From positions 186,001 to 250,000 of the IMG/VR virus record IMGVR_UViG_3300050120_000230: a stretch of 64,000 nt of DNA; one strand, written 5' to 3'. Under the pieces are notes generated by a model that searched no databases, was not told where the DNA came from, and was given only the letters and a program-made list of their open reading frames with translations. This document shows, piece by piece, positions 10,781-64,000 of the stretch (position 1 is its first letter; each line of letters begins with the position of its first letter). A program made the translations under genes and the position numbers.

Positions 10781-11185
10781 ATGCGCGCGCGAGAAATCTT
10801 CGAGGCCCCGGAACAACTGCGTCTCTCGATAGAGCGCACCAGCGACACTGCATGGCTCATCACGGCGACCATGGGAGATGAACTGGCGGGAACACTGAGC
10901 ATTGCCCCATCCCGCTCTGGCTACGGCCTGCCGGGCAGCTATTCTGTCATGAACGTCGGCGTGAACCCGCAATATCAGCGCAAGGGCATCGCCACGGCCA
11001 TGTATGATTTCGCCTACAAGAAGGGTTTCGCGCCCTTGACGCCTGATCCGAAGCAATCGCCGGACGGGCAGGCATTCTGGGCGAGGGCATACGAGAAAAA
11101 GCTGAGACTCGGTAAACCGCGTCCGACCCATGAGTGGGGCAAACTTCGTGGTTTCCGCAAGCCTCGCAATGGGCCGCCGGAATGA
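10781..11185 (+). CDS. GNAT-family acetyltransferase with capsid-targeting-like N-terminus
   Basis: VGVNPQYQRKGIATAMY (GNAT motif A, QRKGIA); starts MRAREIFE; TAAATA 4 nt upstream. Confidence 0.8.
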   Translation: MRAREIFEAPEQLRLSIERTSDTAWLITATMGDELAGTLSIAPSRSGYGLPGSYSVMNVGVNPQYQRKGIATAMYDFAYKKGFAPLTPDPKQSPDGQAFWARAYEKKLRLGKPRPTHEWGKLRGFRKPRNGPPE

Positions 11186-12228
11186 AGCTCTTCGAAGTCC
11201 ACAAGCAGGGCCAGACGTTCTACGAGACGGATCACCGGTATCTCTACCACCTGACCGATCATCACGGGTTCGCTTACACCGTGGATCAAAACGCGTTGCG
11301 CGCAATGCGACAGGGCTACGTCAGCACGACGTATGATGCCAACAAGAACGGCGTTTTCGGTTACTCGCATTACGACTTCAAGTTCGTGCTCGACGGCAAG
11401 GCGCTCGTGTCAGAATACGGCGGTTTCAACTACGACCACCACATCATGGTCGGCGACGCAAAGAACATCGAGTCGTTGGATGAACGCGAGATCGGTATCG
11501 AGACGGGCGAGATTGAACCGTTCAGCCAATACCTTCTCGGCACCCAACTTCTGTTCCCGATTTTCAGTCAGAAATCTATCCAATGGCTGCTCTACGACAA
11601 CAAGGAAATGTCGGGATGGGGCACGAAGCGGACGCAGGCTCCGCGCACCATCGAGACGCTCTACAAGGTCATGGTCGAGTGGAAGAAACCGATCTGGGTC
11701 TACGACACCAAACCGCGCAAAATGAACGCCCACGAGATGCAATTCATCGAAGATGTCCTGAAGCTCCACAACGCCGGTGCGAACTTCGACGAGGGGATGC
11801 GAGAGCTTTCCGCGAAATACCCGATCAAGGATCACTGGGACAAAGATTTGGATCGCCGGATGGTGGAACGCCGCCAGCAATCCGAGGTGATCTACAAGGC
11901 CCTGAACAAATATTATCAGGGGCGCCCATACCAGAAGGTGGACACGAGCGTCGTTCGCAATCTCATCACCAAAGCGATCAATGTGCTCGGGCTCGGGAAC
12001 AACATCGAATCTGTTGTGCTTGGAGCAATTGAAGAGCAGGGCTTGTTCCACCAGATGATGGCCCCTGTGGATTGGGGAATTATCCTCAAGCCGCTCATGG
12101 ATGGCGATGTCGAGGACGCTCTAGAGCATATCCAGTGGACCGGCCGTGAGAAGGCCAGCCACAAGCGTCGATATGATGCCGACCCGGAACAATTTGCCTA
12201 TTCGAACCACGTTGGAACGCGTTTCTAA
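11182..12228 (+). CDS. ADP-ribosyltransferase-like protein (putative)
   Basis: YLYHLT, YVSTTYD and DEREI resemble the H-S-ExE ART triad; starts MKLFE. Confidence 0.5.
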   Translation: MKLFEVHKQGQTFYETDHRYLYHLTDHHGFAYTVDQNALRAMRQGYVSTTYDANKNGVFGYSHYDFKFVLDGKALVSEYGGFNYDHHIMVGDAKNIESLDEREIGIETGEIEPFSQYLLGTQLLFPIFSQKSIQWLLYDNKEMSGWGTKRTQAPRTIETLYKVMVEWKKPIWVYDTKPRKMNAHEMQFIEDVLKLHNAGANFDEGMRELSAKYPIKDHWDKDLDRRMVERRQQSEVIYKALNKYYQGRPYQKVDTSVVRNLITKAINVLGLGNNIESVVLGAIEEQGLFHQMMAPVDWGIILKPLMDGDVEDALEHIQWTGREKASHKRRYDADPEQFAYSNHVGTRF

Positions 12229-12246
12229 TTTTTGGTTAACGAGATT

Positions 12247-12275
12247 TTGACTTCAGTGCGATACCTGCCTATTGT
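12247..12275 (+). promoter_or_regulatory. sigma70-type promoter of the OMP gene
   Basis: TTGACT-N17-TATTGT. Confidence 0.6.
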
Positions 12276-12327
12276 GCGGAGATCGGGCGGTGACGCCTGA
12301 ATTTCACTGAAGGAAGACAAAAAAACT

Positions 12328-12867
12328 ATGAAGCAATTTATTGCGACTTTGGCCGCTGTGGCGGCTTTCGCGGTTGCCGGTTCGGCTGCTGCGGCTTCTC
12401 CGGTTGCGGGCTATTACGTCCAAGGCTCCGGTGGTCAGAACTACCAATCCGACCGTGACAGCGGCACTGCCCTGTCCGCGTCGTTCGGCAAGGACTTCGG
12501 CAAGGTCCGGGTTGAAGGCGAATACCTCGCGACTCGCGGCACCAACTCCGCGACGCTCGGCGACACTGCCGCCAACCTCGTGAACGCCAACGTGTTCTAT
12601 CAGCCGATCACGTTCGCGAACATCACCCCGTTCATCGGAGCGGGCGTCGGTTACGGCGAACTGTTCCGCAGCGGCGTGGTGGGTGACCAAAATGGCGTCG
12701 TGTTCAACGGCACCGTGGGCGTCTCCTATCCGATCAGCGGCAAGCTGAGCGCGGTTCTGCAATATCGTGAGTTCCTCGCGAACTCGATCCAGTTCCGCAA
12801 GGCTCCGGGCAACACCGACAACTACAAGGCGTCGGTTGCCACCATGGGTCTGCGCTACACCTTCTAA
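12328..12867 (+). CDS. 8-stranded outer-membrane beta-barrel protein (Omp25/RopB/opacity-like)
   Basis: signal peptide ending AAA; amphipathic strands RVEGEY, PFIGAGVGY; C-terminal GLRYTF BAM signal. Confidence 0.85.
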   Translation: MKQFIATLAAVAAFAVAGSAAAASPVAGYYVQGSGGQNYQSDRDSGTALSASFGKDFGKVRVEGEYLATRGTNSATLGDTAANLVNANVFYQPITFANITPFIGAGVGYGELFRSGVVGDQNGVVFNGTVGVSYPISGKLSAVLQYREFLANSIQFRKAPGNTDNYKASVATMGLRYTF

Positions 12868-12894
12868 GGTTAACGCCCCATTGAAGTAGTTATG

Positions 12895-12929
12895 AGGGGC
12901 GGGGGCAAGTTCTCCCGCCCCTTTTTCTT
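12895..12929 (+). terminator. intrinsic terminator
   Basis: AGGGGCGGG.../...CCCGCCCCT stem followed by TTTTCTT. Confidence 0.8.
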
Positions 12930-12937
12930 GACACGAC

Positions 12938-14155
12938 ATGGAACTCTTCTATGGTGTGTCGTATACAGTCTCGGAGGCTCACTTGCCAGAACCGCTCTTG
13001 TTCGGGATCATTTTGATCCCCGTCGCGATTTCGTTGTTCTGCAAGTATGCCTTGCGGTTCGAGATTTCGTGGCTCGAATTCGCCGCGCAACTGGTGATTG
13101 GTTTCTGCGTCTTCAGCCTGATTTGGGCTGTCGGTCGCTACTCGGCCGCCGGAGACACCGAAATCCTCAATGGCACGGTGCAGTCGAAGAACGCATGGCG
13201 TTTCTCCTGTCCGACCAACACCAGCAATCCGTGCCGCAACGGCTATTCCTGCCACTCGCACCAAGTCTGCTCGACCGTTGGTAGTGGCAAGGACGCCCAT
13301 GAGTCGTGCCATGAAGAGCACGATACCTGCTACGAATACGACTGGGAGCAGAACTGGTATGTGAAGTCGAACGTGCCGACCGCTTCCGAGATCGAGATCA
13401 AGCGCGTGGACGCGCAGGGCGCCTATATGCCGCCGCGCTACGACAAGGTTCAGGTCGGCGACCCGGTCTCCGGCACACATGCCTACAAGAACTGGGTGAA
13501 GGCTTCGGTCAACTCGCTCTTCAAGGAAGATGCGGGCAAGGACGAGACCTACAAGGCGCTGATGAAGCCCTATCCCATCGGCATCGTCGATTACTACAAC
13601 ATCGACCGGATCGTGACGCCCAATTTCCCGCTCGCCAACAAGCAAGCTTGGAACTGGGAACTGTCCAAGATGCTGGGCAAGCTCGGCCCGAGCCGTCAGA
13701 TGAACATGGTGGTGGTCATCGCCAACAACGTTCCGCGCGACTACGCCTATGGCGTTCGTCGTAGCTGGCAGGGGTTCAAAAAGAACGACGCGATCATCGT
13801 GATCGGCCTGCAAAATGGCAAGGTGTCGTGGGGCGAAACGATGTCGTGGTCGAAAAACTCGATCTTCAACATCGAAATGCGTAATATGGTGACCGATCTG
13901 CAAGGGACGGACATCAATGCGGTGAACCCCGCGACGTTCTTCGCCAACGTTCAGACGATCTCCACCAAGGACTTCGTCCGCCGCCCGATGAAAGAATTCG
14001 AGTACCTCAAGGGGGACATCCCGCCGCCGGTTTGGTTGATCGTCCTCTCCGTCATTCTCGCCATCCTGTTTGGCGTGGGAACCAGCGTGCTTTTCAACAA
14101 CGTCGATCTTGACGCCGCGATCTTCTCCGGCCGTCGCAACCAGAATTGGAGCTAA
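12938..14155 (+). CDS. membrane protein with TPM-like domain
   Basis: two N-terminal and one C-terminal TM helix; Cys-rich loop; SWQGFKKNDAIIVIG resembles the TPM W-x-G-K...N-G-hydrophobic motif. Confidence 0.6.
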   Translation: MELFYGVSYTVSEAHLPEPLLFGIILIPVAISLFCKYALRFEISWLEFAAQLVIGFCVFSLIWAVGRYSAAGDTEILNGTVQSKNAWRFSCPTNTSNPCRNGYSCHSHQVCSTVGSGKDAHESCHEEHDTCYEYDWEQNWYVKSNVPTASEIEIKRVDAQGAYMPPRYDKVQVGDPVSGTHAYKNWVKASVNSLFKEDAGKDETYKALMKPYPIGIVDYYNIDRIVTPNFPLANKQAWNWELSKMLGKLGPSRQMNMVVVIANNVPRDYAYGVRRSWQGFKKNDAIIVIGLQNGKVSWGETMSWSKNSIFNIEMRNMVTDLQGTDINAVNPATFFANVQTISTKDFVRRPMKEFEYLKGDIPPPVWLIVLSVILAILFGVGTSVLFNNVDLDAAIFSGRRNQNWS

Positions 14156-14157
14156 CT

Positions 14158-14784
14158 TTGTCCGACACCACCGCAACTCGTTCGGGGCCGAACGGCCTCA
14201 TCATCGGCCTCTGCGTCGCCGCAGCCGTCGTGGCCGTGCTCTTCGTCATGCTGTTCAGCAGCTACACCGGCGCCGTCGCCTATGGTGCTCAGTCCGAGCA
14301 GCAGATCAACGCGACGTGGGAGAACAACAAGCAAATCCTCGGGACCTACACGACCAAGATCGGCGAAATGGCCCAAGTCCCCGGCATGGCTCGCGGCGAC
14401 CTTCAGAAGGTCATCCAGACCAGCATGTCGGCGCGCTACGGCGAGGATGGGTCCAAGGCCACCGTGCAGTGGATTCACGAGAACTATCCGGGCTCCGTTG
14501 ACCCCGCGCTTTATCGCAACATCCAGACCGCTATCGACGCGGGCCGTACCGACTTCTCGGAGAACCAGAAGCGCCTTCTGGACCAGAAGCGTGAATACCA
14601 GACCCACCTCGCCTACGTGGTGCAGGGGTTCTGGCTGCACGCCGCTGGCTATCCGAAGATGGACCTGAACAAGTTCAACGTGGTCACCTCGACTTCGGCC
14701 GAACACTCGTTCACCACCGGCGTCGATGACGGCGTGAAGCTGCCGAGTTCCGACCCGGCGCCTGCGGCTCCGGCCAGCAAGTAA
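14158..14784 (+). CDS. LemA-like membrane-anchored helical protein
   Basis: TTG start 6 nt after GGAG; single N-terminal TM then helical EQQINATWENNKQIL segment; adjacent to the TPM-like gene. Confidence 0.55.
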   Translation: MSDTTATRSGPNGLIIGLCVAAAVVAVLFVMLFSSYTGAVAYGAQSEQQINATWENNKQILGTYTTKIGEMAQVPGMARGDLQKVIQTSMSARYGEDGSKATVQWIHENYPGSVDPALYRNIQTAIDAGRTDFSENQKRLLDQKREYQTHLAYVVQGFWLHAAGYPKMDLNKFNVVTSTSAEHSFTTGVDDGVKLPSSDPAPAAPASK

Positions 14785-14811
14785 GCGTTCACCCATCGGC
14801 AATACTGGGAG

Positions 14812-14836
14812 AGGCGGGGCATGTCCCCGCCTTTTC
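14812..14836 (+). terminator. intrinsic terminator
   Basis: AGGCGGGG-N5-CCCCGCCT followed by TTTCT. Confidence 0.8.
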
Positions 14837-14843
14837 TATTTGG

Positions 14844-14871
14844 TTGACGAGAATCACTTCTGGGGTAAACT
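14844..14871 (+). promoter_or_regulatory. early/host-type promoter
   Basis: TTGACG-N16-TAAACT. Confidence 0.65.
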
Positions 14872-14904
14872 GTAGGCATAAGGGAACAACCCGGAGGCAC
14901 AACT

Positions 14905-15342
14905 ATGACCGAGCGCATGACTTTCACCACCGTCAATGGCTACAAGGCTTCCGCTGCGGATCAGGTCGATACCATCCGCAAGCTTCTCGAAGGCTTCGGC
15001 TCCATCGCCTACATGTCCGGCACGCGCGGCATCGAAATGAAGCTCGGCGCCGAAATCAACATGCGTCTGGCCATCCTTCACAATCTGTTCGCCCGCATGA
15101 CGGTCGCTGACCAGATCGACGAAGAAGAACTCGAAGGGAAGGGCGCGCGCATCGACCGCCTCGACAAGCAAGGCCGCGAAGTTCTCCGCGAAGAACTGGC
15201 CTTCATCGCCGGGACCGTCAACGACCCCTATCTCTACGCCTCGGAACCGGTCAACTACCAGCAGGCCGCCGTCATCAACCTCCACAAGGCCCGCGACATC
15301 CTCGCCTATCGTGTGGAACGCAACACGCGCGACCCGGCCTGA
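14905..15342 (+). CDS. hypothetical protein
   Basis: GGAGG RBS; 145 aa; strong codon bias. Confidence 0.75.
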   Translation: MTERMTFTTVNGYKASAADQVDTIRKLLEGFGSIAYMSGTRGIEMKLGAEINMRLAILHNLFARMTVADQIDEEELEGKGARIDRLDKQGREVLREELAFIAGTVNDPYLYASEPVNYQQAAVINLHKARDILAYRVERNTRDPA

Positions 15343-15524
15343 TGCGTCGCGAAGTCGTAACCGTGGGGGCGCTTTTGCGTCGTGGCTTCCGGCGAATGCT
15401 GGACCAAGAGGGTGTTTCCTATTCGGAAGACAGGGGGTTCCTCGACAGCCAGTTCATCGTCAAGGGTGAACCCGAGGCGATGGCCCGCGTCGAAAAGCGC
15501 ATCAAGGACACGCTCGGGAAATGA
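15342..15524 (+). CDS. small hypothetical protein
   Basis: TGATG coupling; 60 aa. Confidence 0.65.
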   Translation: MRREVVTVGALLRRGFRRMLDQEGVSYSEDRGFLDSQFIVKGEPEAMARVEKRIKDTLGK

Positions 15525-16090
15525 AGGCCATTTCCAAAGCCATCAAACGCGTTGAGGTAAAGGCCACCATCGAACGCAAGTATGAGGTGGTTCTCACGAA
15601 CAGCGAGAACCAGACCATTTGCGCGCTGCTGACCAATTCGCTCCGCGAGGCCCTCACCGAGGCAGCGGAGTGGGCCGACTTCTGTGGCATCGTTCTAACG
15701 CCGTATCGCGTCATGGGTAAGATCGTAGAGCCGGTCACCAAGGACACCTACAAGCAAACCACGCTCAAGACGTTCGCGCAGCTTCATGCGGAATATCGGA
15801 CGAGCGGTGGCGAACTGAATTGGAACAAGCTGATGCATTGGGAGTGGCAACGCTTCCGGGGCACCTACAAGGACAAGGAAGCCATGAAGTTGTGGCTCCT
15901 GCCGCATTTCATGGAGAGCAAGCCGCCGACGTTTGATGAGGCGGTGGCCCGTGCAGGGACCAAAGACTCCCCGGCCGTCGAATGGCTGAGCGCCAACGCC
16001 ACGGGCTCGTGGATGCCTTCCAAGGGCGGCTATCGGTTCTCCGATGATCGAGATGCCGCTCTGTTCAAACTGTTTTTCGCTGGAAACTAG
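15521..16090 (+). CDS. hypothetical protein, FKL-motif family
   Basis: ends YRFSDDRDAALFKLFFAGN. Confidence 0.7.
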   Translation: MKAISKAIKRVEVKATIERKYEVVLTNSENQTICALLTNSLREALTEAAEWADFCGIVLTPYRVMGKIVEPVTKDTYKQTTLKTFAQLHAEYRTSGGELNWNKLMHWEWQRFRGTYKDKEAMKLWLLPHFMESKPPTFDEAVARAGTKDSPAVEWLSANATGSWMPSKGGYRFSDDRDAALFKLFFAGN

Positions 16091-16099
16091 GAGGATCGC

Positions 16100-16489
16100 A
16101 TGTTCGAGATTCACGGCGAGGCCGATTCGAAAGTTCTCTACGATCTGTGCACCGAGCTTGGCGCGGATTACCGCAAGACCGCCGTCGTGCCGCTGGCGAG
16201 CGACATTGACACACGCATCGCCGCCGCACTGGCCGTGCCTGTGGCGCCCTACGCCAACTCCTTGGAAGCGGCTTTCGCGTTGAGGGACATCGTTTTCCCG
16301 AACGTCGAATATCTGAACGTGGATTTTCGCGAATATTTCTATGCGGATCACGGCATGTCCTATCATTGTGACGTGCGACATGAATACGGAGAAGGCTGCG
16401 GCCGGGGCTCCACCCGCGCCCGCGCGCTGGTGTGCGCTATCCTGATGCACGTCATCTATGCGTTGGATGAGCAACGGACTTCACGCTGA
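16100..16489 (+). CDS. hypothetical protein
   Basis: AGGAGG RBS; 129 aa. Confidence 0.7.
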   Translation: MFEIHGEADSKVLYDLCTELGADYRKTAVVPLASDIDTRIAAALAVPVAPYANSLEAAFALRDIVFPNVEYLNVDFREYFYADHGMSYHCDVRHEYGEGCGRGSTRARALVCAILMHVIYALDEQRTSR

Positions 16490-16911
16490 TGTTCTACGAG
16501 AAGGCCCTGCGTGGCCTCTCCATCGATGAGATGCAAAAGCTCATCAACATCATCGTAGCCGAAGGTCAGCGAAGCCAACCCCTCCTGACCGACTACGGGA
16601 AGATTACCAACGACGTTGTGTGGCTGCATAGCATCATGGGTATCGCGTTGCAGTTCACCTACCACAAGGGCAACGTGAACGTGCCGTCGTTCCGTCTAGA
16701 GGGTTCAGAGTGGGCGATCACTTTCAAAGGGTCGCGAAGCTCATCGCTGATGCCGCGCTTTCACGATTACATCGAAATCAGGATCGGGCCTCTGGAACGT
16801 ACCATGCGTCCGCCGCCCACCGCGACTAAGTTTTTCGCGCACCAATTTCGGCGGCGTGGTAAACTGTCGGACTTCAAGCACGACCTGACTTTGCTGAGGC
16901 TGACCCTGTGA
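16489..16911 (+). CDS. hypothetical protein
   Basis: TGATG coupling; ends SDFKHDLTLLRL, similar to the end of 9989..10528. Confidence 0.65.
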   Translation: MFYEKALRGLSIDEMQKLINIIVAEGQRSQPLLTDYGKITNDVVWLHSIMGIALQFTYHKGNVNVPSFRLEGSEWAITFKGSRSSSLMPRFHDYIEIRIGPLERTMRPPPTATKFFAHQFRRRGKLSDFKHDLTLLRLTL

Positions 16912-17207
16912 CCAGATATCGATTGAACATCGAAAGCGTAGCTCGTGTCGGCGGCTTCGTTGCGATGCTGTCTGTGTTTTTTATTTTGATGGGAACAACA
17001 CCGGAAGATAGTGTGCCGCCGTGGTGGGCCATCGCTCCCATGATCGTGTTGTTTTTGATGAGCGTCATCTATCTCTCTGGCGGCAACGCAGGCATGAAGT
17101 ATTTCGGAGACTGCCTCGCCAAGTTCTTCCTCATCAAGATCGAACCCGCCGATGAGATTTCCGAGATCGACGAGGATCGCTGCAAGGGCCGAGAGGTTCC
17201 AGATTGA
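16908..17207 (+). CDS. small membrane protein
   Basis: two hydrophobic helices. Confidence 0.6.
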   Translation: MTRYRLNIESVARVGGFVAMLSVFFILMGTTPEDSVPPWWAIAPMIVLFLMSVIYLSGGNAGMKYFGDCLAKFFLIKIEPADEISEIDEDRCKGREVPD

Positions 17208-17512
17208 AGCTCTTCCTCGACGATGAACGGTTTCCTCCGAACGATGGTGCGTTCTGGATCATCGTCAGAGACGTGGGCGAAGCCGTGACGTTGATGGAGC
17301 AGACCGGCTGTCCGGGTTTCCTGTCGTTCGATCATGATCTCGGGAAGAACGTCCCCACGGGTTATGATCTGGCTCACTGGATGGTTGAGCGAGACATGGA
17401 CCAAGATGGCAAGTTCATCCCCGCCAATTTTGAATACTACGTTCACAGTCAAAACCCACCGGGGGCCGCGAACATCAAGGCTTTGCTCGACAATTACTTG
17501 AAACAGCGGTAA
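17204..17512 (+). CDS. cyclic-phosphate-processing receiver-domain protein (cREC-like)
   Basis: KLFLDDER, LSFDHDLG, TGYD and VHSQNPPG motifs. Confidence 0.75.
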   Translation: MKLFLDDERFPPNDGAFWIIVRDVGEAVTLMEQTGCPGFLSFDHDLGKNVPTGYDLAHWMVERDMDQDGKFIPANFEYYVHSQNPPGAANIKALLDNYLKQR

Positions 17513-17538
17513 ATAGGGTCTCCACCAACGGAGAACCC
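17510..17538 (+). promoter_or_regulatory. TAAATA late promoter overlapping an RBS-sequestering hairpin
   Basis: TAAATA at 17510-17515; GGGTCTCC (17516-23) pairs with GGAGAACCC (17530-38). Confidence 0.6.
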
Positions 17539-17540
17539 CG

Positions 17541-17753
17541 ATGAAACAGAAGCAGCCGCGCAAGGCGCGGAACATGGTGGCGAAGGCAATGCACGAGTGC
17601 AAGCTGTTCGCCCCGAAAGCCATCCCCTCCAAAAAGGGCAAGGGCACCATCTACAACCGTAAGAGCCGGAACGCCAAAGAGCCTTCCGGCTCTTATTATT
17701 TTGGACTACTGGTTCGCTCCGACATATACTTTGGGCATGGCGTTTGCATTTAG
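17541..17753 (+). CDS. arfA: ArfA-like alternative ribosome-rescue factor
   Basis: RNMVAKAMH...LF...KKGKGTIYNRK aligns by eye with E. coli ArfA NAIEALLHDPLF...KKGKGSYMRK; 70 aa with hydrophobic tail. Confidence 0.7.
   Translation: MKQKQPRKARNMVAKAMHECKLFAPKAIPSKKGKGTIYNRKSRNAKEPSGSYYFGLLVRSDIYFGHGVCI
17660..17702 (+). terminator. intragenic intrinsic terminator within the arfA-like ORF
   Basis: AAGAGCC-TTCC-GGCTCTT plus ATTATTTT; alternative stem 17660-70/17685-95. Confidence 0.7.
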
Positions 17754-17916
17754 AAACTTCGTGATTGCTATCGGTTGCTTGGGCGTTGTGCTCGGCTTCG
17801 GCGGCATGATCGTGGATTGTTTCTTCAATGCCGTCTGGCCGGTCACCGCAGTGGGGTTCTTGCTTTGGTGGATCGCTGGCGAAACGCTCTGCAAAATAGA
17901 CGGAGACGAGGATTAA
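17737..17916 (+). CDS. small membrane protein, probably leaderless
   Basis: two TM helices; TTGGAC-N18-TATACT ends 6 nt before the ATG. Confidence 0.6.
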   Translation: MAFAFRNFVIAIGCLGVVLGFGGMIVDCFFNAVWPVTAVGFLLWWIAGETLCKIDGDED

Positions 17917-17917
17917 C

Positions 17918-18190
17918 ATGCCATCCATGGAACTAGATGCATCTGACATTCAATTGCTGGCCAAGGCCAAGCAAGGCCCCGTATATCGCGGGCTGTTCGG
18001 CTGGCCGATCAACTCGATGATCGGCCCCATGCGAATCCAACACATGGTAGACTACGGCTACCTGCAATTCATTTACGACTGGGGTAAGGATCGCCCGGCC
18101 GTCCGCATCACGTCGCTGGGAGACTGTCGCCTGCGAGAAGAGTTGGAGCGCGACGTGCAGATCGTTCGGGGCGTCGATATTCGCGTCTAA
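17918..18190 (+). CDS. hypothetical protein
   Basis: 90 aa; follows GAGGA. Confidence 0.65.
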   Translation: MPSMELDASDIQLLAKAKQGPVYRGLFGWPINSMIGPMRIQHMVDYGYLQFIYDWGKDRPAVRITSLGDCRLREELERDVQIVRGVDIRV

Positions 18191-18238
18191 GCGAAGAAAA
18201 ATATTGCAGCCCAATCTCGTATACCATATATTCAAATC

Positions 18239-18502
18239 TCGGGTCGGCCAAACGTGCACGTTCGGCTTTTCCGAGTTACGCCCGTCCAAGCGACCGCATG
18301 AGGACGTTAAACTAAAGGGTGGTGGCTTTTAGCCCGGTTGGGTCGAAACCGGCTCTTGTTTAGGGGACCAAGTTCAACATCCTCTGCGCTCGCTTGTGGC
18401 GCGATGGCGCTAGTCATCATTACAGGTCGGCCCCGCTCTGGGCCGCATTATGGGGTAAGCTACCCCTTGAAAGGCCCCGGCGTATGGCATCGCCGGGGCT
18501 TT
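18239..18502 (+). ncRNA. candidate structured non-coding RNA (~260 nt)
   Basis: TTGCAG-N17-TATATT promoter (18204-32), several hairpins, terminator 18474-18502, no credible ORF. Confidence 0.5.
18474..18502. terminator. probable bidirectional terminator
   Basis: AAAG-GCCCCGGCG-N8-CGCCGGGGC-TTT between convergent units. Confidence 0.7.
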
Positions 18503-18508
18503 GGCATG

Positions 18509-18757
18509 TCAGGGCGGATAATCCACCCAGAACCCCAGTTTGAACATCACGCCGTGTTCCGCTTCCGTGAAGAACATGAACGTGTTGTTCCATTCGGCAT
18601 CATAGCCACTGTGATCCGCCCAACGCAGAGCGCGCCCAATTTCTTCGGTAGTCGCCCTTCGACAGAGTATGTCGAAAAATGCGACGCGAAACGGATACTT
18701 CTCCGCGAACTCGCCCGTCGCTTCAGCCGTCCAAGAGACTTTGTAGGACGGAATCAC
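18509..18757 (-). CDS. hypothetical protein, FKL-motif family
   Basis: GTG start overlapping the upstream stop; ends FFTEAEHGVMFKLGFW. Confidence 0.6.
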   Translation of the reverse strand: MIPSYKVSWTAEATGEFAEKYPFRVAFFDILCRRATTEEIGRALRWADHSGYDAEWNNTFMFFTEAEHGVMFKLGFWVDYPP

Positions 18758-19152
18758 GCGGCCAGTTCCAACAGATCGTCTTTCAGATCGTTCATGAACT
18801 GGTTGGCCAACCGCACGGCATGATCGGAGTTGGCTTTCACGCCATCCGCCCAAACCTGCTGAAGCTTCGCATCGGTGAACACCTCGTCGGCACACGATGC
18901 ATGTAGCGCGTCTCGGCGTTTCTGAATGATCGCGACGGCCTGCCGCACGTCGCTCATCGTAAACTGGCTGGTGGCGATTTTGCCGAACAGTTTTGCTTCC
19001 AAAGCGGCCGGGCCAAGTTCATCTCGGCGGCGAGACTGCGCTTCGTGCTTGGCGCCATGGCGATTACCTCCCACGAGGTTCCACGCGTTCGACAGGTGGC
19101 TCAGGCGAGCCCGGTCGGAACTGGACAAGGTGATGACGGTTTCGATCTTCAT
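18754..19152 (-). CDS. hypothetical protein
   Basis: GGAGG RBS before the ATG at 19152. Confidence 0.7.
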   Translation of the reverse strand: MKIETVITLSSSDRARLSHLSNAWNLVGGNRHGAKHEAQSRRRDELGPAALEAKLFGKIATSQFTMSDVRQAVAIIQKRRDALHASCADEVFTDAKLQQVWADGVKANSDHAVRLANQFMNDLKDDLLELAA

Positions 19153-19203
19153 GGCGGCCTCCTTCATTTCCAGTATACCCCACATTCTGGAAATGATGAC
19201 CGC

Positions 19204-19536
19204 CTAGTAGGATTTTAATTTCGGAGGGTTTTCCATACCGGGCCAATGTGTCGGCTCCGGCATGGACTCGTCACTGAAGAACAGCCTGAACATCGCGCGG
19301 TCACGTTCGTCTCTAAAGGAGAACGATCCGTAGCGATTGCTCCACACCATATGGCTCTTCAAGTTGCGGTCGCACCAGTCGAGCATCTCGTTCATTTTCA
19401 CGCGACTGTAGGGCTGAGCCATCGACATCTTGTCCGTCGATGTCCAATATTCACAGGCCGGATAGAGACCGAACTCAAGCGAACCTTTGCGCTGCTGAAG
19501 TTCGTTGATCGGTTCGAGATACCAGAACTTGGCCAT
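19204..19536 (-). CDS. hypothetical protein, FKL-motif family
   Basis: FSFRDERDRAMFRLFF. Confidence 0.7.
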   Translation of the reverse strand: MAKFWYLEPINELQQRKGSLEFGLYPACEYWTSTDKMSMAQPYSRVKMNEMLDWCDRNLKSHMVWSNRYGSFSFRDERDRAMFRLFFSDESMPEPTHWPGMENPPKLKSY

Positions 19537-20186
19537 CAGGCTGCTTCCGGCTGTCTGAAGTCGAACGTCAGCCTGAACTCGACCATGTCGGTCAGGTTCT
19601 CGAACATGAAGCGATACGGTTGTTTCGCCTTGGAGTCCTCAATCTCGTCTTCATCGGGAAGCCAGACGGTCCACCGCCCGCCGTGACGGGTCCTGCCCCA
19701 AATATCGCGCGCGACTTGCCCGGCCGTGGCATGGCCGACCAAGAATACGGCGGTGTGGAACTCGACACCCGCCTTGATGGCGTCCTTGAGATGATCTTCA
19801 GGGATGAAGCCCGAATGTGGGTCCGTCCAGAACGGCGTCTTGAAGTCGTTGAAAACTGGCGGCAGGCCGCTGTTGAAACGTATGATCCGAACAGTCTGCA
19901 AGCGGTTCCTCGTGCGTTTCTTCAAATCCACCATCGGATCATGCCCTTTGGCGATCAACGCTTTGTCTATCTGCCGGTCGCGAGAGATGTCATTGAACAT
20001 ACCGAACGCACTGTCGCGCATGGTCTTTTCCAAGACCATCGTCTTGATGTATCTCTTGATCTCCTGCTTTTGAGCATGGAGATTGTTGATGCCGGGCGAG
20101 CGCCCGTATTCCATCAGTTCCGCGATCTCACGACCGCGAGTAGCCTTGCCTCTATACCATTCGAGGATTTCTTTGCGGTAAGGCAT
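19536..20186 (-). CDS. hypothetical protein, FKL-motif family
   Basis: TAATG coupling; ends FMFENLTDMVEFRLTF. Confidence 0.7.
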   Translation of the reverse strand: MPYRKEILEWYRGKATRGREIAELMEYGRSPGINNLHAQKQEIKRYIKTMVLEKTMRDSAFGMFNDISRDRQIDKALIAKGHDPMVDLKKRTRNRLQTVRIIRFNSGLPPVFNDFKTPFWTDPHSGFIPEDHLKDAIKAGVEFHTAVFLVGHATAGQVARDIWGRTRHGGRWTVWLPDEDEIEDSKAKQPYRFMFENLTDMVEFRLTFDFRQPEAA

Positions 20187-20788: not shown

Positions 20789-20874
20789 TGTTTGCTCCTA
20801 GTTGGGCCGGACGTGCTTCAACGATCAAGATACCATTCTTCCTATTTCCGTCAACGAAAACGCTAAATAGGTAT

Positions 20875-21465: not shown

Positions 21466-21747
21466 GTCTTTCATCTTCTCGAAAATAAAGCTCGACAGGA
21501 GCCGTCCCTCAAAATTGGGGATGTGACGGTTCATCTCGGCTGTCGATTTTTGATGGATCGAGATTTCTTGAGTGCGCTGCATGTTCTTCAGCGCCGCAGT
21601 CTCGTTGCGATGACAGAACCACTTCAGGCTCAGTTTGTCGCCATCGGGGCGCCACTTGCCGAAATATTCCCAAATTTGCCCGTCAACTCTACCCCAGCCC
21701 CAAACGGTAGCGGTTTCGCGATCATATAGATGAAAATGCCAGTCCAT
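21439..21747 (-). CDS. hypothetical protein
   Basis: 102 aa; GGAG upstream. Confidence 0.55.
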   Translation of the reverse strand: MDWHFHLYDRETATVWGWGRVDGQIWEYFGKWRPDGDKLSLKWFCHRNETAALKNMQRTQEISIHQKSTAEMNRHIPNFEGRLLSSFIFEKMKDSDELVEPA

Positions 21748-21794
21748 TAGACTCCCCTTGCGGCAAAACTACAGCAAAGATTGTGCCAAGCAAG

Positions 21795-22172: not shown

Positions 22173-22249
22173 AAGACCAATACTGAAAGCTTTGTGGGGG
22201 TATTTATACTCGCACAAAACCACAACCTTTCGTCTCAAATAAATATCGG

Positions 22250-55964: not shown

Positions 55965-57749
55965 ATGGCTGGTTTGAAGACTCGATATAAAGTTGTCGGC
56001 ATCGGCATCTTGGCTCTGGGAGGCGTCTTCGGTCTGAAGTCTGCCGTTCAACATGGCCTGATCCCGGCTCCGGCCGCTCTCAAGGCGATGATCCCGCAGA
56101 AGGCTGACATCGCGACGCTGGGTGGCAACATCCAGATCGCGCCGACCCAGACCTATGACCTGTCCGCCGCGCCGGAAGCGAACGCGCCCAAGCGCACGTT
56201 CCTGATGATTCCGTGGCAGGGCGGCGGTGCGCTGACGCTCGCCAACGGCGGCGCCGGTGACGCCAGCGGCACGTTGATGCAGAAGTTCGCGGGTTCGAAC
56301 GTGAACCTTCAGCGGCAGGACGACTACGGCAAGATGCAAGAGCAACTGCTGAAGTTCGCCAGCGGCTTCAAGGCCGGTCAAGCGAACCCGGATGGTGCGG
56401 CCTACGTCCAGATCATGGGCGACGGTGGCCCGGCGTTCTTCGCCGGTGTCGAGCCCCAGATGGAGAAGCTCGGCCTTCACCTGAAGATCGTCGGCGTGAC
56501 CGGCTTCTCGCACGGCGAAGACAAGTGCATGGCGCCGGACGTGAACGGTGACCCGAACAAGGCCCGTGGCGACCTGATCGCCGCCGTGCCGCGCGACGGT
56601 GACTGGAACATCTGCGTCAAGTGGGCGTCGGACAACAACATTCCGATCAACACCGACAACACGGTCTACGATCCGACCGCCATCAACTTCGTCGATACGG
56701 ACAGCTTCACGCAAGCCGACGACAAGTTCATCGCGGGCGCCTACGAAGATCGTGACGAAGCCAAGAACGGCATCAAGACGGGCAAGCGCGTCCACGTCCA
56801 GATCAACGGCGTGGCGACGTGGACTCCCGGCGACGTGACCGTCATGGAGAAGAAGGGTGGCGTCGTTTCGCTGGCCTCGACCAAGGACTACGACCAGCAG
56901 ATGCCCGCCGTCATCATCGGCATCAAGGAAGAAATGGACAAGCACCCGGCGTTCGTCACCGGTATGCTTCGGGCCGTTGACCGCGCATCGTTCCAAGTCC
57001 GCACGACTTCGGATGGTGTGCAGAAGATGTCGGAAACTGAAGCCAAGGTGTTCGGCTCGGCGGGCGGCGACGAAGCGAAGCCGGAATACTGGGCACGCTT
57101 CTTCAACGGCTTCGACAGCCCGGACGGCAAGGTGAAGCTCGGTGGGTCGCGCGTTTCGACGCTGGCCGAAATCCGTGACTTCATGGGCATGGGCACCGGC
57201 ACCCTGAACGTCTACCAAGGCGTCTGGAACGTGTTCGGCGACTACGACAAGACCTTCTACCCGAAGCTGGTCCCCAGCTATCCGAAGTTCGCTGACGTGG
57301 TCGATACGAGCTACATCAAGGCCGCCCTCAACGGCGTCCAGATGACGGCTCCGACTTCGACGGCGTTCTCCACCCAGAAGACGATGTCGGCGACCGTGTC
57401 CAAGAAGGCCGTCTCCATCGAGTTCGACAACGGTAAGGCGACGATCCGCCCGACCAGCCGCGCTCAACTGGTGGACATCGCCAACCAGTCCGGCATGACC
57501 AGCCTGCTGATCCGCATCGAAGGTCACACGGACAACACCGGCAACCCGGATGCGAACGTCGCCCTGTCGCGGGCTCGCGCTCAAGCGGTGGCTACGGCGC
57601 TGACGAACATGGCCCCGGCCACGTTCCCGGCGACCCGTATGGAAGTGCGTGGCTACGGCGACACGAAGCCGGTCAACGATACGGCCGACCAGAACTCGCC
57701 GACCGAGCGCGCGAAGAACCGCCGCGTCGAGGTGATCCTCGGCAACTAA
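55965..57749 (+). CDS. ABC transporter substrate-binding protein (NitT/TauT-like) fused to a C-terminal OmpA-like peptidoglycan-binding domain
   Basis: N-terminal membrane anchor; IEFDNGK, EGHTDNTG, LSRARAQAV, GYG and NRRVEV OmpA motifs. Confidence 0.85.
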   Translation: MAGLKTRYKVVGIGILALGGVFGLKSAVQHGLIPAPAALKAMIPQKADIATLGGNIQIAPTQTYDLSAAPEANAPKRTFLMIPWQGGGALTLANGGAGDASGTLMQKFAGSNVNLQRQDDYGKMQEQLLKFASGFKAGQANPDGAAYVQIMGDGGPAFFAGVEPQMEKLGLHLKIVGVTGFSHGEDKCMAPDVNGDPNKARGDLIAAVPRDGDWNICVKWASDNNIPINTDNTVYDPTAINFVDTDSFTQADDKFIAGAYEDRDEAKNGIKTGKRVHVQINGVATWTPGDVTVMEKKGGVVSLASTKDYDQQMPAVIIGIKEEMDKHPAFVTGMLRAVDRASFQVRTTSDGVQKMSETEAKVFGSAGGDEAKPEYWARFFNGFDSPDGKVKLGGSRVSTLAEIRDFMGMGTGTLNVYQGVWNVFGDYDKTFYPKLVPSYPKFADVVDTSYIKAALNGVQMTAPTSTAFSTQKTMSATVSKKAVSIEFDNGKATIRPTSRAQLVDIANQSGMTSLLIRIEGHTDNTGNPDANVALSRARAQAVATALTNMAPATFPATRMEVRGYGDTKPVNDTADQNSPTERAKNRRVEVILGN

Positions 57750-60646: not shown

Positions 60647-62236
60647 ATGGACATTCTAGAGCAACTTTTGAGTCAGGCATTCGCCGCCGAAGGTTTGGAC
60701 CCCGCACTTGCTGTGGTGTCGCCTTCGGAGCGGCCGGACCTTGCCGATTTTCAATCGAACGGAGTGTTTCTAGCGGCCAAGGCTGCGCGGATAAATCCTC
60801 GGGCTCTGGCCGAGCGGATCGTTGAACGGCTCAAACACCCAGACATCACGTTCGAAGTAGCCGGGCCGGGCTATATCAACATGACGCTGGGTCCGGCTCT
60901 GCTCGAAAAGATGCTGCTGGACAACAGTCCGATCCCACAGGTTTCCGGTCGGATCGTGTTGGATTTCGGTGGACCGAATGTCGCCAAGCCGATGCATGTG
61001 GGTCATATGCGGTCTCTGGTGATCGGTGACGCCCTTCAACGGATTTTGCGGTTCGTGGGCTACGAGGTGCTGTCCGACATCCACCTCGGCGACTGGGGCC
61101 TCCAAATGGGCCTGTTGCTGGCGGCCTTGGAAGGCACACCGCTACATGACTACAATATCGCGCTGTTGGAAAAAACCTATCCACAGGCGGCGGCTCTTGC
61201 CAAAGAGGATGAACCCTTCCGGTTGAAGGCACAGATGTTCACGCGCCTACTGCAACAAGGTGATCCCGAGCTTATGCAGCGGTGGCGGAAAATGGTCTGC
61301 GTGAGCATGACCACCGTCAATCGGGAGCTTGCTGCTCTGAAAGTCAATTTCACTCTCATGAAGGGTGAAAGTGACGTTCAGGACTTGATCCCCGATATGA
61401 TCGCGAGCTTCGTCGCCAAAGGGATCGTAGAGGAAGACAACGGGGCGCTCGTCGTCCGGGTTGGAGAACCTCCACTCATCCTGCGGAAGTCGGATGGTGC
61501 GGCTCTCTATTCCACGACCGATCTCGCGACGATCCTTGATCGGAAGGCAGCCTTCGATCCCGACAAGATCATCTATGTGACCGATGAACGGCAGCAACTT
61601 CACTTCAAGCAGGTTTTCGCGGCGGCCGAGATGGCTGGTTATCTGAACGGCAAGCTCGAACTCGAACACATCTGGTTCGGGACGGTGAACGACGCCAATG
61701 GCAAGCCACTCAAGACGCGGGCTGGTGGTGTGCCGAAGTTGCACGACCTGATCGAAGAAGCGATCACCAAGGCGTCCGAGAAGAATGCTGAATCGGCGAT
61801 CCCGGTGGCTATGGCGGCGTTGAAGTTCGCCGATCTACAAAACCCTCGGACAGGGTCGTATTCTTTCGATCTCGATAAGTTCCTGAGCTTCGAAGGCAAG
61901 ACCGGCCCATATCTGCTCTATCAAGCGGTGCGGATCAAATCCATCCTCGTCAAGTCGGTTGAACCCGGCCCGATTACGCTTGAGACCGCACAGGAGCGGG
62001 CTCTTGCGTTCAAGCTGGTGTTCGGTTTCCGGCAGGCGCTCGATGGCGCCGTGCGGCGATTGTCGCCCAAAGAGATCGCCGATCACGCCTACGATCTCGC
62101 GCAATCCTTCTCGAAGTATTATGCGAACACGCAGATCGGAGAATCACCGTCGAGGGTGGCCCTCTCTGCCAAGGTGTTGGCCCAACTGGAATGCTGCTTG
62201 GGTCTGATGGGTATCGATATCCCCGAGCGGATGTGA
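60647..62236 (+). CDS. argS: arginyl-tRNA synthetase
   Basis: N-terminal add-on domain (ADFQSN, VAGPGYIN), PNVAKPMHVGHMRS HIGH motif, GDWGLQMG, KSDG..LY.TTDLA, EGKTGPYLLY and DALR-type anticodon domain. Confidence 0.95.
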   Translation: MDILEQLLSQAFAAEGLDPALAVVSPSERPDLADFQSNGVFLAAKAARINPRALAERIVERLKHPDITFEVAGPGYINMTLGPALLEKMLLDNSPIPQVSGRIVLDFGGPNVAKPMHVGHMRSLVIGDALQRILRFVGYEVLSDIHLGDWGLQMGLLLAALEGTPLHDYNIALLEKTYPQAAALAKEDEPFRLKAQMFTRLLQQGDPELMQRWRKMVCVSMTTVNRELAALKVNFTLMKGESDVQDLIPDMIASFVAKGIVEEDNGALVVRVGEPPLILRKSDGAALYSTTDLATILDRKAAFDPDKIIYVTDERQQLHFKQVFAAAEMAGYLNGKLELEHIWFGTVNDANGKPLKTRAGGVPKLHDLIEEAITKASEKNAESAIPVAMAALKFADLQNPRTGSYSFDLDKFLSFEGKTGPYLLYQAVRIKSILVKSVEPGPITLETAQERALAFKLVFGFRQALDGAVRRLSPKEIADHAYDLAQSFSKYYANTQIGESPSRVALSAKVLAQLECCLGLMGIDIPERM

Positions 62237-62496
62237 TGCGCTGGTTCTGGGAAATGCTCTATCGCCGCCAAGCGGTAGAGGTTGTCCTTGATCGAGATTG
62301 CATCAGAGTTCTCGGCGGTGATGGTCCCACGACCTTGGCCAGACTACGAGATGTCGAGCGCGAATGGTGTCGTCACAACGTTCGCAGGCCATTCGGTCTA
62401 TATTGCCGATGGCGAGGCGTAGGGGGCGGATACCATGCGTATCTGTGGTTCATTGAGCCGAAAGATGCTGCACTCTTCAAAATGTTTCAAACGTGA
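62236..62496 (+). CDS. hypothetical protein, FKL-motif family
   Basis: ends LWFIEPKDAALFKMFQT. Confidence 0.65.
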   Translation: MRWFWEMLYRRQAVEVVLDRDCIRVLGGDGPTTLARLRDVEREWCRHNVRRPFGLYCRWRGVGGGYHAYLWFIEPKDAALFKMFQT

Positions 62497-62513
62497 CGTG
62501 TCCTAAATAGTGG

Positions 62514-63650
62514 ATGCGTGAGTTCATCAATCTCCTAGAGCAAGCCGACAACGTCACGCTCTATCGCGGCGACAGCGGCCCTGTGGAGAAGTTCGAACTG
62601 GCCAAGACCGATTCAGGAGCTTTGCTCGGCATCGGCATCTATCTCACCGATAGCCCGGAAGTGGCTGGCGACTATACCGTCAAGGGTTCCCAAGACATCG
62701 CCTATCCGTCAGGGCGCCGGGGCGAAGACAATTCGTTCAACGATCCGAAGCAATTGACCGCTGGGTATCTGCGGAAACTCATGAACGATGCTGGTTTCCA
62801 ACAGCAAATGGACGACACGAAAAATCAGTGGCAGGACAAATATTACAGCCTGTCGCGAGATATCGATTGGACCGACCATGAACGTGCTCGTAAGGAGCGC
62901 GACGAAATGCAAGCCAAGTTCCAAGCGGACTATCAGGTCGTCCGATCCAAGATGATCCGCGCCGCCGTGGCCAAGGCCAAGGCACAGTTCAAGGCGATTC
63001 GACCGAACCTACGGATGGTCAAGCTGACCACTGGGGAATACATCTTCACGAAAGTTGGCCGGGCGGCCAGCATCGCGAAGTTTATCGTGCCTACGGCCTA
63101 CCTCGAACGATGCCTTCATGCTGAGCGGCCTCTGCCTGATGATCTTCTTCCGATCATGAAAGCGGCTTTCGCTCGTGTGGCTCATGACAAAAACCCCGAT
63201 CAAAAATGGGACCTACGGGTTCGGAATCCCAAGGGGAACAACGGCGACGAAGACATTGGCCTTTCATTCGATGAGTTCATCGCAGGCTTTCGTAAAGCGG
63301 GCGCTCGCTACGCGTGGACGGACGAAGTTCGTGGCGGCAAGGGTGAGAACCCTTCGCTCGACATCCTCTGGAACGGCACGCACAGCGGCTATCACGTCTT
63401 CCAGAACAAAGAAGCACAAGAGACCCTCATGCATGAACTCATGGCCATGGGCTACGTCGGCTACGCCTACGACGGCGGCGTTCGTCTAGCTGGCACCGGT
63501 GCTCGTGGTGGCGGTGGCATTCGTCACAACGCCTACGTTCTTTGGGACGAAAATGCCGTTCATTCTTTCCGCGTCGAGGGCGGCGGGGTGACTGATGACG
63601 AAGTCGGTGACTTGGAAAAAGGTATCAAGGCAGCAAAAGTCCTGCGTTAA
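62514..63650 (+). CDS. ADP-ribosyltransferase-like (polyvalent-protein ART type) late protein
   Basis: TLYRGD, GIGIYLTD..EVAGDY; starts MREFINLLE; TAAATA 4 nt upstream. Confidence 0.6.
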   Translation: MREFINLLEQADNVTLYRGDSGPVEKFELAKTDSGALLGIGIYLTDSPEVAGDYTVKGSQDIAYPSGRRGEDNSFNDPKQLTAGYLRKLMNDAGFQQQMDDTKNQWQDKYYSLSRDIDWTDHERARKERDEMQAKFQADYQVVRSKMIRAAVAKAKAQFKAIRPNLRMVKLTTGEYIFTKVGRAASIAKFIVPTAYLERCLHAERPLPDDLLPIMKAAFARVAHDKNPDQKWDLRVRNPKGNNGDEDIGLSFDEFIAGFRKAGARYAWTDEVRGGKGENPSLDILWNGTHSGYHVFQNKEAQETLMHELMAMGYVGYAYDGGVRLAGTGARGGGGIRHNAYVLWDENAVHSFRVEGGGVTDDEVGDLEKGIKAAKVLR

Positions 63651-63664
63651 ACACTAAATAGTTC

Positions 63665-64000
63665 ATGTTTTCGATGCGTGAACTGATGTTGATGGTCGAA
63701 ACCGAGCGTCCGAGAGAAGGGCCGCCGGTTCCCGACACGTTGTTCCATGGCACCGGTGAAGAAGCGTGGAATAGCATCCAAGAGAGCGACACCATGTATT
63801 CGTCGGATCACAGAGACGAAGACGCTATTTCCTTCACCACCGATTGGCACACTGCAAATCGCTTCGCACAAGCCGTAGCCAAGCGAGAGGGCGGCGCCGG
63901 AGTCATCATCGAGTTCAACGGTGACGATCTGGCTCGCAAGTTCAACGTCGAGCCATTTTCAGATAGTGGGCTGGTTCACGCCGAACAAGAATGGCTAGTC
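63665..64000 (+). CDS. ADP-ribosyltransferase-like protein, 3'-truncated by the window edge
   Basis: own translation: MFSMRELMLMVE...LFHGT...ISFTTD...AEQEWLV; TAAATA 63655-60; not in the ORF track. Confidence 0.6.
   Translation, partial: MFSMRELMLMVETERPREGPPVPDTLFHGTGEEAWNSIQESDTMYSSDHRDEDAISFTTDWHTANRFAQAVAKREGGAGVIIEFNGDDLARKFNVEPFSDSGLVHAEQEWLV

Follow-up and report, generated by a model that had tools for sequence, protein, structure and literature searches.

Bacteriophage T4 loads internal proteins into its head by means of a short capsid-targeting sequence (CTS) at the N-terminus, described for IPII and IPIII by Mullaney and Black (1996) and since reviewed (PMC9026906; PMC9958956). 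The first 10 residues of IPIII are enough for packaging; residues 4 and 7 weigh most in targeting and residues 8 and 10 in processing, and an Asp at position 10 blocks processing while targeting is kept (PMC9026906). Cleavage by gp21 takes place after L/I-x-E, and the packaged ADP-ribosyltransferase Alt has more than one gp21 processing site (PMC9026906). Both the T4 sequence and the CTS-like proteins of T-even phages are established, and the sequence has been suggested to be an evolutionary device for loading varied proteins (PMC9026906). Here we investigated a set of short N-terminal peptides, referred to below as tags, in a 64-kb stretch of DNA (the window) that spans positions 186001-250000 of a 415,409-bp uncultured jumbo phage contig (IMG/VR UViG_3300050120_000230). 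From their likeness to the T4 sequence and from their conservation among homologues, these tags are probably T4-type capsid-targeting propeptides, with packaging and cleavage of the tagged proteins as the predicted outcome.

A first-pass annotation of the window had listed 15 such peptides, and all 15 were found at plausible gene starts, on the + strand at 10781, 11182, 20875, 22250, 22833, 28276, 36653, 39918, 40685, 43401, 45912, 62514 and 63674, and on the minus strand at 26188 and 30724. An independent gene caller gave the same starts for 10781 and 11182 in another assembly of the same phage. The tag consensus is M-R-x-(x)-x-[E/D/N]-hydrophobic-hydrophobic-x-E, over 8-13 residues. When the pattern ^M[RK]x(2,3)[DEN][ILVFM][ILVFM] was tested on all 2238 ATGs of the window it matched 12, nine of which were gene starts (9/85 versus 3/2153 for other ATGs; Fisher p=2e-11), corresponding to a ~85-fold enrichment at gene starts. 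Apart from the tag, the ORFs proved to be unrelated, as the annotation had it: an all-against-all BLASTP without the first 15 residues returned no pair at E<0.5. As in T4, a short N-terminal peptide (10-19 aa) is common to otherwise unrelated proteins of the window. The annotation's figure of at least 15 cargoes was too high, as ~10-11 of the window tags are convincing and 4-5 are weak; further tags lie elsewhere on the contig. A metallophosphatase gene at 29057 (MRIHLLSDLHFE) and several internal or out-of-frame ATGs were false positives of a position matrix, so the motif score alone is insufficient for counting weak tags.

A shared N-terminus could in principle be a remnant of common descent, from one paralogous family or N-terminal domain, and in the cultured relative Atu_ph07 the proteins gp53-63, with M[RK]WxQL[TN]E starts, are indeed paralogs. 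For the window we regard such an origin as extremely improbable. In addition to the lack of similarity past 15 residues, the tagged proteins belong to different folds and families (GNAT-like, ADP-ribosyltransferase, AAA+, NUDIX and Hydrolase_2), and some homologues are entirely without the leader.

The likeness to the T4 tag that the annotation had proposed extends to individual residues, at the four positions important in T4. In the T4 record, IPII and IPIII start with MKTYQEFIAE, IPI with MKTFKEFTST and Alt with MELITELFDE. In the window tags, positions 4 and 7 are hydrophobic or aromatic, position 8 is hydrophobic and position 10 is Glu. One class aligns with MKTYQEFIAE without gaps (MRQYIDIVSE, MREFINLLE, MRDLIDIV...) and another is one residue shorter (MRYHEIIRE, MRYRELVE, MRAREIFE, MRAFEVLCE), with all four positions kept in both. 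Altogether, ~10-11 of the 15 window tags keep the equivalents of IPIII positions 4, 7, 8 and 10, as do 7 tags elsewhere on the contig, and most window tags end in the gp21 motif L/I-x-E. The tags thereby resemble IPII and IPIII, in which ~10 N-terminal residues precede otherwise unrelated proteins and begin with Met and a basic residue. They differ in carrying Arg rather than Lys at position 2, in often being one residue shorter, in standing on enzymes of 130-600 aa and not only on small basic proteins, and in the far larger number of tagged genes; their carrier is also an Atu_ph07-like jumbo phage, outside Straboviridae. Alt similarly has a short N-terminal propeptide, and its MELITELFDE resembles the window tag MRLFELFD. 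Compared with Alt, the transferases of the window come from other clades (a DarT/Tpt1-like fold for the protein encoded at 22833, ART-PolyVal for others), several are tagged per genome, and one of them has a junction between two domains.

This last protein is encoded at 22833-24071 (+) and is a 412-aa two-domain ADP-ribosyltransferase with the convincing tag MRYRELVE/S (a slash marks the junction). We explored its family of ~120 cluster-level homologues with a pattern scan over 118 of them, of which 92 have a cleavage-type junction. In ~85 of the 92, the mature domain begins with (M)A-x-P, 11-12 residues before YYHGT, and [LIVFM]-x-E lies directly before it. The leaders that precede the junction are 8-27 aa long and include strikingly T4-like ones (MITFKQFIAE/MAAP, MKTFLQFIKE/MAAV). 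A few homologues start exactly at MAxP, without a leader, indicating that the leader is an add-on. In two-domain homologues, including the 22833 protein itself, the junction is internal in 10/10; all have L or I at P3 and E at P1, and P2 varies. The internal junction of the 22833 protein reads ...AAEDELDE/MAPTDQMRSTTFYHGT (ELDE/MAPT) and ends at residue 198 (codon 23424-23426), just before the YHGT transferase domain. Selection for a gp21-type site would be expected to leave just such a pattern of conservation. In a structure model of the protein (mean pLDDT 89), a helix of low confidence (pLDDT 52) at the N-terminus corresponds to the tag, and a coil linking two well-folded domains holds the internal junction. 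The nearest solved structures in Foldseek were DarT and Tpt1 (probability 1.0), both of the ADP-ribosyltransferase superfamily, and tblastn matched an annotated 'ADP-ribosyltransferase exoenzyme toxin' (E=2e-20). H212 and G213 are invariant and the YHGT segment forms an H-Y-E-type motif, as in ADP-ribosyltransferases.

A second family gave a similar picture. The gene at 30062-30735 (-), with its start at 30724, encodes a 220-aa protein with the convincing tag MRDLIDIVKLLVE/G, and CTAAATA lies 4 nt upstream of its ATG. Leaders in this family are 8-20 aa long with indels, and 16/17 homologues end in [LIM]-x-E before G[DE]VV, the remaining one having F-P-D. A terminal L/I-x-E is kept among homologues of both families, as expected for a T4-type tag. 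Relatives of the GNAT-like protein encoded at 10781 have the leaders MRYHEIVE, MRANEFITE and MHLTDLFE.

The conserved P3/P1 junction is the strongest comparative signal and points to cleavage, not targeting; many of the cargoes are, moreover, potentially toxic enzymes such as ADP-ribosyltransferases. The peptide might then be a cleavable propeptide only, keeping a toxic enzyme latent or acting as a protease mark, with the proteins entering the head by other means or acting in the producing cell. We consider this unlikely. For T4 it is established that the gp21-type protease is active solely inside the assembled prohead (PMC9958956), and a substrate must therefore be inside to be cut. In addition, the T4 targeting residues 4 and 7 are conserved in the tags as well, and tagged proteins of Atu_ph07 have been found in virions.

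For capsid targeting followed by cleavage, the protease and virion proteins of cultured relatives are informative. The nearest cultured phages by DnaB identity are Sinorhizobium phage Phosso (51%) and Agrobacterium phage Atu_ph07 (50%), with the PA5oct group next. Atu_ph07 encodes homologues of T4 gp20, gp21, gp23 and gp55 (PMC6102473). Its protease gp204 and related metagenomic proteins show 31% identity to T4 gp21, with His and Ser invariant; gp204 and its homologues belong to PF03420 (>7900 members), and Phosso likewise encodes a gp21-family protease. The virion proteome of Atu_ph07, a relative and not the source phage, comprises 131 proteins by mass spectrometry (PMC6102473, Table S5). Among these virion proteins are several with tag-like N-termini, namely gp43 (MRLIDLLE/SS), gp46 (MKFIDIVGIP), gp47 (MRYKDLKLNE), gp196 (MRWQDISS), gp199 (MKLTELFNPLTE) and the single paralogous family gp53-63. 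Both gp43 and its syntenic ortholog in the window, the MRLFELFD protein encoded at 45912, are 128 aa long (E=9e-5). We scored gp1-235 of Atu_ph07 (185 kb of its 490-kb genome) with the position matrix, which was trained only on ORFs of other contigs, and 7 of the best 8 N-termini belonged to virion proteins versus a background of 68/235 (p=8e-4), an enrichment that is inflated by the paralogy of gp53-63, in a set where 29% of genes are virion genes anyway.

We also investigated how the tagged genes are expressed. TAAATA occurs 20 times in the window versus 5.6 expected, and CTAAATA 10 times versus 1.5 expected. The annotation's statement that most tags follow TAAATA was partly borne out, as 9 of the 15 have it within 45 nt upstream and 6 do not. 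Tagged genes without a TAAATA of their own start 0-3 nt from an upstream stop codon or overlap it. The distance from TAAATA to the next real ATG, scored at 36 sites over 96.7 kb of the contig, was bimodal, with 15/36 sites at 4-5 nt (p=8e-14) and most of 12 leader-bearing sites at 25-35 nt. Tagged genes made up 12/15 of the promoter-abutting class versus 3/12 of the leader-bearing class, the latter three being weak (p=0.006). The cassette (C)TAAATA-N4/5-ATG-CGY is the usual form of tagged genes in the source phage. With the T4 late -10 element, TATAAATA, at -13 to -6, a gap of 4-5 nt would put the start of transcription at or next to the A of the ATG, implying that promoter-abutting genes would yield leaderless mRNA. 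In T4, by contrast, a normal leader containing a Shine-Dalgarno sequence precedes the ip genes. TAAATA is also found 5' of the virion genes at 26516, 36914 and 43401.

A search of IMG/VR with the DNA pattern CTAAATANNGGATGCG, which specifies Met-Arg only, returned at least 120 loci. A tag was present in 17/33 non-redundant ORFs of at least 100 aa at these loci versus 0/34 short ORFs (p=3e-7), examples being MRAKEFITE, MRLRELNE, MRDLLNILNE, MRNWINLLE and MRFHEILLE. Several other giant contigs (149, 240, 499, 561, 578 and 607 kb) contain such loci, as do many smaller T4-like ones, and one contig holds both a PF03420 protease (L202) and the MRAKEFITE protein (L025).

Given this association, the motif might reflect a constraint on RNA or DNA at starts without a Shine-Dalgarno sequence (leaderless or termination-reinitiation), with no protein signal at all; such a constraint could lie in the sequence first transcribed from the TAAATA promoter, for example, or in an unstructured start region. 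No tagged gene of the window has a canonical Shine-Dalgarno sequence, each abutting TAAATA or an upstream stop (0-3 nt or overlap), and promoter-abutting tags are invariably ATG-CGY. The codons of the tags nevertheless speak for a peptide. Arg2 is encoded by CGC, CGT, AGG and AGA (AGG or AGA in the genes at 22833, 28276 and 45912), and both Glu codons, GAA and GAG, occur; the codons for Ile and Leu differ as well. With codon changes at the acidic and hydrophobic positions being synonymous and conservative, this variation indicates that selection acts on the peptide. The [LI]-x-E junction is, furthermore, kept ~200 residues inside two-domain homologues, tagged Atu_ph07 genes have ordinary leaders with Shine-Dalgarno sequences, and three promoter-abutting genes are untagged. 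A constraint without a protein signal is, in our judgement, decidedly unlikely. A simpler form, with ATGCG as a mere part of the promoter and the sole cause of the 'MR' start, was ruled out by the AGG/AGA Arg codons and by the internal junctions.

A start composed of Met, a basic residue and hydrophobic residues also loosely recalls known ClpX N-terminal motifs. Atu_ph07 encodes ClpX, ClpA, ClpB, a ClpP-like protein and ClpS (PMC6102473), and the peptide might be some other N-terminal recognition signal, for instance for Clp-type unfoldases, proteases or adaptors, or for a chaperone. We find this very unlikely, as such a signal would account neither for the invariant junction Glu and the likeness to the T4 CTS nor for the occurrence of tagged proteins in virions and the link to a T4-late-like promoter.

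Several observations weigh against a capsid-targeting propeptide, the inflation of the Atu_ph07 enrichment described above being one of them. Several of the listed tags are very short or degenerate, and the tag at 45912 has Asp, not Glu, at the expected P1, which in T4 blocks processing but not targeting. An untagged ART-PolyVal protein is encoded at L040:7556-8125 (+), at contig ~267.5 kb (Pfam 7e-12), with TAAATA 44 nt upstream, and the leader is thus not on every ADP-ribosyltransferase of the phage. TAAATA is also found 5' of ribonucleotide reductase genes (48772 and 51723), so the promoter class is not clearly late and the word is used by analogy; the only gp55-like sigma factor known here is that of the relative Atu_ph07. 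Finally, a reading of ~160 kb of the 415-kb contig (about 87-154, 166-253 and 260-269 kb) revealed sheath, terminase, gp32 and RecA homologues, but no gp21-type protease, scaffold or late sigma factor of the phage itself. With Atu_ph07 gp204 as query, 44 related loci were recovered, none of them on the source contig, which is likewise absent from the best 80 of >600 matches of a protease-alignment search and from the top 120 homologues of gp204. Synteny with Atu_ph07 suggests that the protease, scaffold and late sigma factor genes lie below contig 87 kb.

On balance, we infer that the tagged proteins are probably packaged, cleaved and injected. In the mechanism that we propose, the tag would bind the scaffolding core of the assembling prohead, enclosing whatever protein follows, and a gp21-family serine protease (Pfam PF03420) would cut after [L/I/V/M]-x-E and free the mature enzyme in the head; the freed enzyme would then be ejected with the DNA into the next host. 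At the level of expression, the cassette would place a T4-late-like -10 element beside the start codon, giving a leaderless transcript. Cargoes would probably include several ADP-ribosyltransferases, a GNAT-like protein, a NUDIX hydrolase, a cell-wall hydrolase and many small uncharacterised proteins. The core of the first-pass proposal, a portable T4-type peptide for capsid targeting and cleavage on unrelated cargo, has good, if indirect, support from the T4 match, the junctions, the protease and virion proteins of relatives and the cargo types, while its count was overstated; of the cargo types that it named, ADP-ribosyltransferase and GNAT-like proteins have supported tags, whereas the AAA+ ATPase is a weak case, with only the 5-residue MRLVE.

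More tentatively, the promoter, start and tag could form a three-in-one cassette that makes any downstream ORF into cargo, providing Shine-Dalgarno-independent leaderless expression, packaging and protease trimming. Such a cassette might be common across uncultured phages of 140-600 kb, both T4-related and jumbo, and might define a large, mostly uncharacterised set of injected effectors, in which multi-domain effectors like the 22833 protein would be polyproteins cut in the head at internal L/I-x-E junctions. In the full-text literature we found no description of T4-length, T4-motif tags in Atu_ph07-like or Rak2-related jumbo phages, nor of a promoter-start-tag cassette or of internal junctions in two-domain effectors. 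Should the tag act as its T4 counterpart does, head-carried proteins that are injected before gene expression could be predicted from sequence alone, by a ten-residue motif; host-takeover and anti-defence proteins are expected in this class, most of whose members found here are without assigned function. A mechanism known only from T-even phages would then extend to Atu_ph07-like jumbo phages and many uncultured lineages, and ready-made tags would be at hand for loading proteins into large-capsid phages. The homologues that begin at the Met of MAxP suggest a route of cargo recruitment, namely the addition of a leader before an existing start. Promoter-abutting starts would make the phage an unusual case, with one set of genes expressed systematically from leaderless transcripts and ordinary ribosome-binding sites serving the others.

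Two other groups of phage proteins invite comparison. In the phiKZ-like giant phages phiKZ, 201phi2-1 and SPN3US, a diverged gp21 homologue cleaves head and ejection proteins after Glu, and the propeptides are thought to direct proteins to the prohead (PMC5694885). Those propeptides are often >100 residues long with the motif S/A-x-E, whereas the tags of the source phage are of T4 length with L/I-x-E. Polyvalent and MuF-fused effectors (Iyer, Aravind and colleagues; PMC9503650) are similar in their ADP-ribosyltransferase, NUDIX and acetyltransferase-like cargo, which is predicted to be delivered with the DNA. The source phage differs from them in having a short, putatively cleavable tag on separate small proteins, with neither a structural head fusion nor a single giant polypeptide; no Pfam match to the MuF domain was found in the tagged proteins, which are separate and 58-594 aa long. 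As in polyvalent proteins, the GNAT-like domain of the 10781 protein also recurs 4-9 times within metagenomic giant proteins of 2,000-4,700 aa (P0261-P0265).

Among the remaining window genes with convincing tags, the GNAT-like gene at 10781-11185 (+) encodes 134 aa (Pfam Acetyltransf_1, 5e-6) and has the tag MRAREIFE/A, with CTAAATA 4 nt before the ATG (cassette and tag at 10770-10805, +). Proteins without assigned function are encoded at 20863-21465 (+; start 20875, 196 aa), with the tag MRAFEVLCE/G and CTAAATA 5 nt from the ATG, and at 22240-22846 (+; start 22250, 198 aa), with the tag MRYHEIIRE/D and TAAATA 4 nt from the ATG; the latter tag had the highest score with the position matrix. 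The 89-aa ORF at 28276-28545 (+) carries MRQYIDIVSE/E and its start overlaps the stop of the virion gene at 26516-28276. The 92-aa protein encoded at 39918-40196 (+) has the tag MASIREHIDLVE/S, which is without Arg2, and the 128-aa gp43 ortholog discussed above lies at 45912-46298 (+). Toward the end of the window, a 378-aa protein (62503-63650, +; start 62514) with the tag MREFINLLE/Q shows a weak ART-PolyVal match, CTAAATA lying 4 nt from its ATG, and a 129-aa protein (63655-64000, +; start 63674; ORF extending ~63 nt past the window end) with the tag (MFS)MRELMLMVE/T has TAAATA upstream and a weak KptA/Tpt1 similarity. The convincing tag MRTVIIAE/G of a 97-aa protein (24111-24404, -) was absent from the first-pass list, as was a possible tag, MDELGEDQLQMRGFIEITE, with an N-terminal extension, on a 102-aa protein (34184-34503, +; start 34195) with TAAATA 5 nt from the ATG.

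Weak tags are found on a 348-aa protein without assigned function (11182-12228, +; MKLFE/V), whose ATGA start overlaps the upstream stop; on the 594-aa AAA+ ATPase (24404-26188, -; MRLVE/F), with TAAATA 31 nt upstream and a Shine-Dalgarno-like AAGGG; on a 75-aa protein (40685-40912, +; MRFFEI), with TAAATA 25 nt upstream; and on a 93-aa protein (43401-43682, +; MKIRE), at approximately the position of Atu_ph07 gp45/gp46 and upstream of the gp44 homologue. The tag MRWKEIIANE/S of a 58-aa ORF (36653-36829, +) is doubtful. This ORF starts 1 nt past the stop of 35890-36651, in a different frame, and aligns to an internal C-terminal segment (the last ~50 residues) of the Atu_ph07 virion protein gp53; it may be a separate small gene or a frameshifted tail, perhaps with no N-terminal tag. 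In Pfam and PHROG, most tagged proteins of the window and of other giant contigs were without a match. No ESM Atlas match was found for the 11182 protein, and tblastn against cultured phages gave nothing useful for the 62514, 45912 and MRAKEFITE proteins.

Outside the window, the same contig encodes further tagged proteins: an ART-PolyVal protein (MRYREIIGE), a Hydrolase_2 cell-wall hydrolase (MRVDDIFPPEVIDE), a 154-aa protein (MSIRQFMNIIVE), three ~200-aa proteins (MRDFINLVE, MRSHEIFE and MRAHEIMTE) and a NUDIX hydrolase (MRIHDLFE/A). An independent survey has argued that ADP-ribosyltransferases and NUDIX enzymes are often packaged in myovirus heads (PMC9503650). The cargo types found with tags (ADP-ribosyltransferase, NUDIX, cell-wall hydrolase and GNAT-like) match kinds known or predicted to be packaged.

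The window has a G+C content of 55%, and 20 kb of it, when compared with cultured phages, showed no near-identical DNA. Atu_ph07 is collinear with the window from 63 kb down to 23 kb, except for window 8.6-26 kb. This interval (8600-26200) is without an Atu_ph07 counterpart, lies between the gp74 and gp72 homologues and contains 6 tagged genes; we read it as an accessory island in which tagged genes are concentrated and which is comparable to the variable loci for internal proteins in T-even phages. Those loci were reportedly described by Repoila et al. in 1994 and by Comeau and Krisch in 2005. They likewise combine a conserved 5' end (expression signals and tag) with variable cargo and accessory clustering (PMC9026906). 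In the source phage, however, DNA conservation covers only ~16 nt, (C)TAAATAnnGGATGCGY, and recombinational shuffling, as proposed for T-even phages, would need a longer stretch.

Virion structural proteins are encoded nearby, at 26505-28276 (+; gene 26516-28276, with TAAATA 5 nt from the ATG), where an untagged 586-aa protein is a homologue of Atu_ph07 gp72, and at 43684-45708 (+), where a 674-aa protein is a homologue of gp44 (21 mass-spectrometry peptides). Within a 171-aa ORF at L052:8739-9254 (-), at contig ~252 kb, 47 consecutive residues share 51% identity with part of the Atu_ph07 major capsid protein (E=5e-12). Like these virion proteins, other products of the window are typical of jumbo phages: a class I ribonucleotide reductase (48772-51246), a DnaB-like helicase (32418-33875) and an arginyl-tRNA synthetase (60647-62236). 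The last is one of at least three aminoacyl-tRNA synthetase-like genes in the phage, together with SerRS (L253:19389-20561) and a PheRS-type tRNA-synt_2d gene (L256:16701-17831). A 594-aa protein (55965-57749) has an OmpA-family peptidoglycan-binding domain at its C-terminal end; near it are an outer-membrane beta-barrel-like gene (12328-12867) and, upstream of the window, Bax1-I and Band_7 proteins (L255), a membrane-associated gene set that is unusual in a phage.

Lastly, ATATTTTAA, inside a TATATTTTAA-like sequence, occurs in 3 copies versus 0.13 expected (1416-1424, 32399-32407 and 46793-46801). Each copy lies 0-10 nt 5' of a replication or recombination gene, namely a UvsW-like helicase (1425), DnaB (32418) and an exonuclease (46811), and the sequence may represent a second promoter or start-site class.

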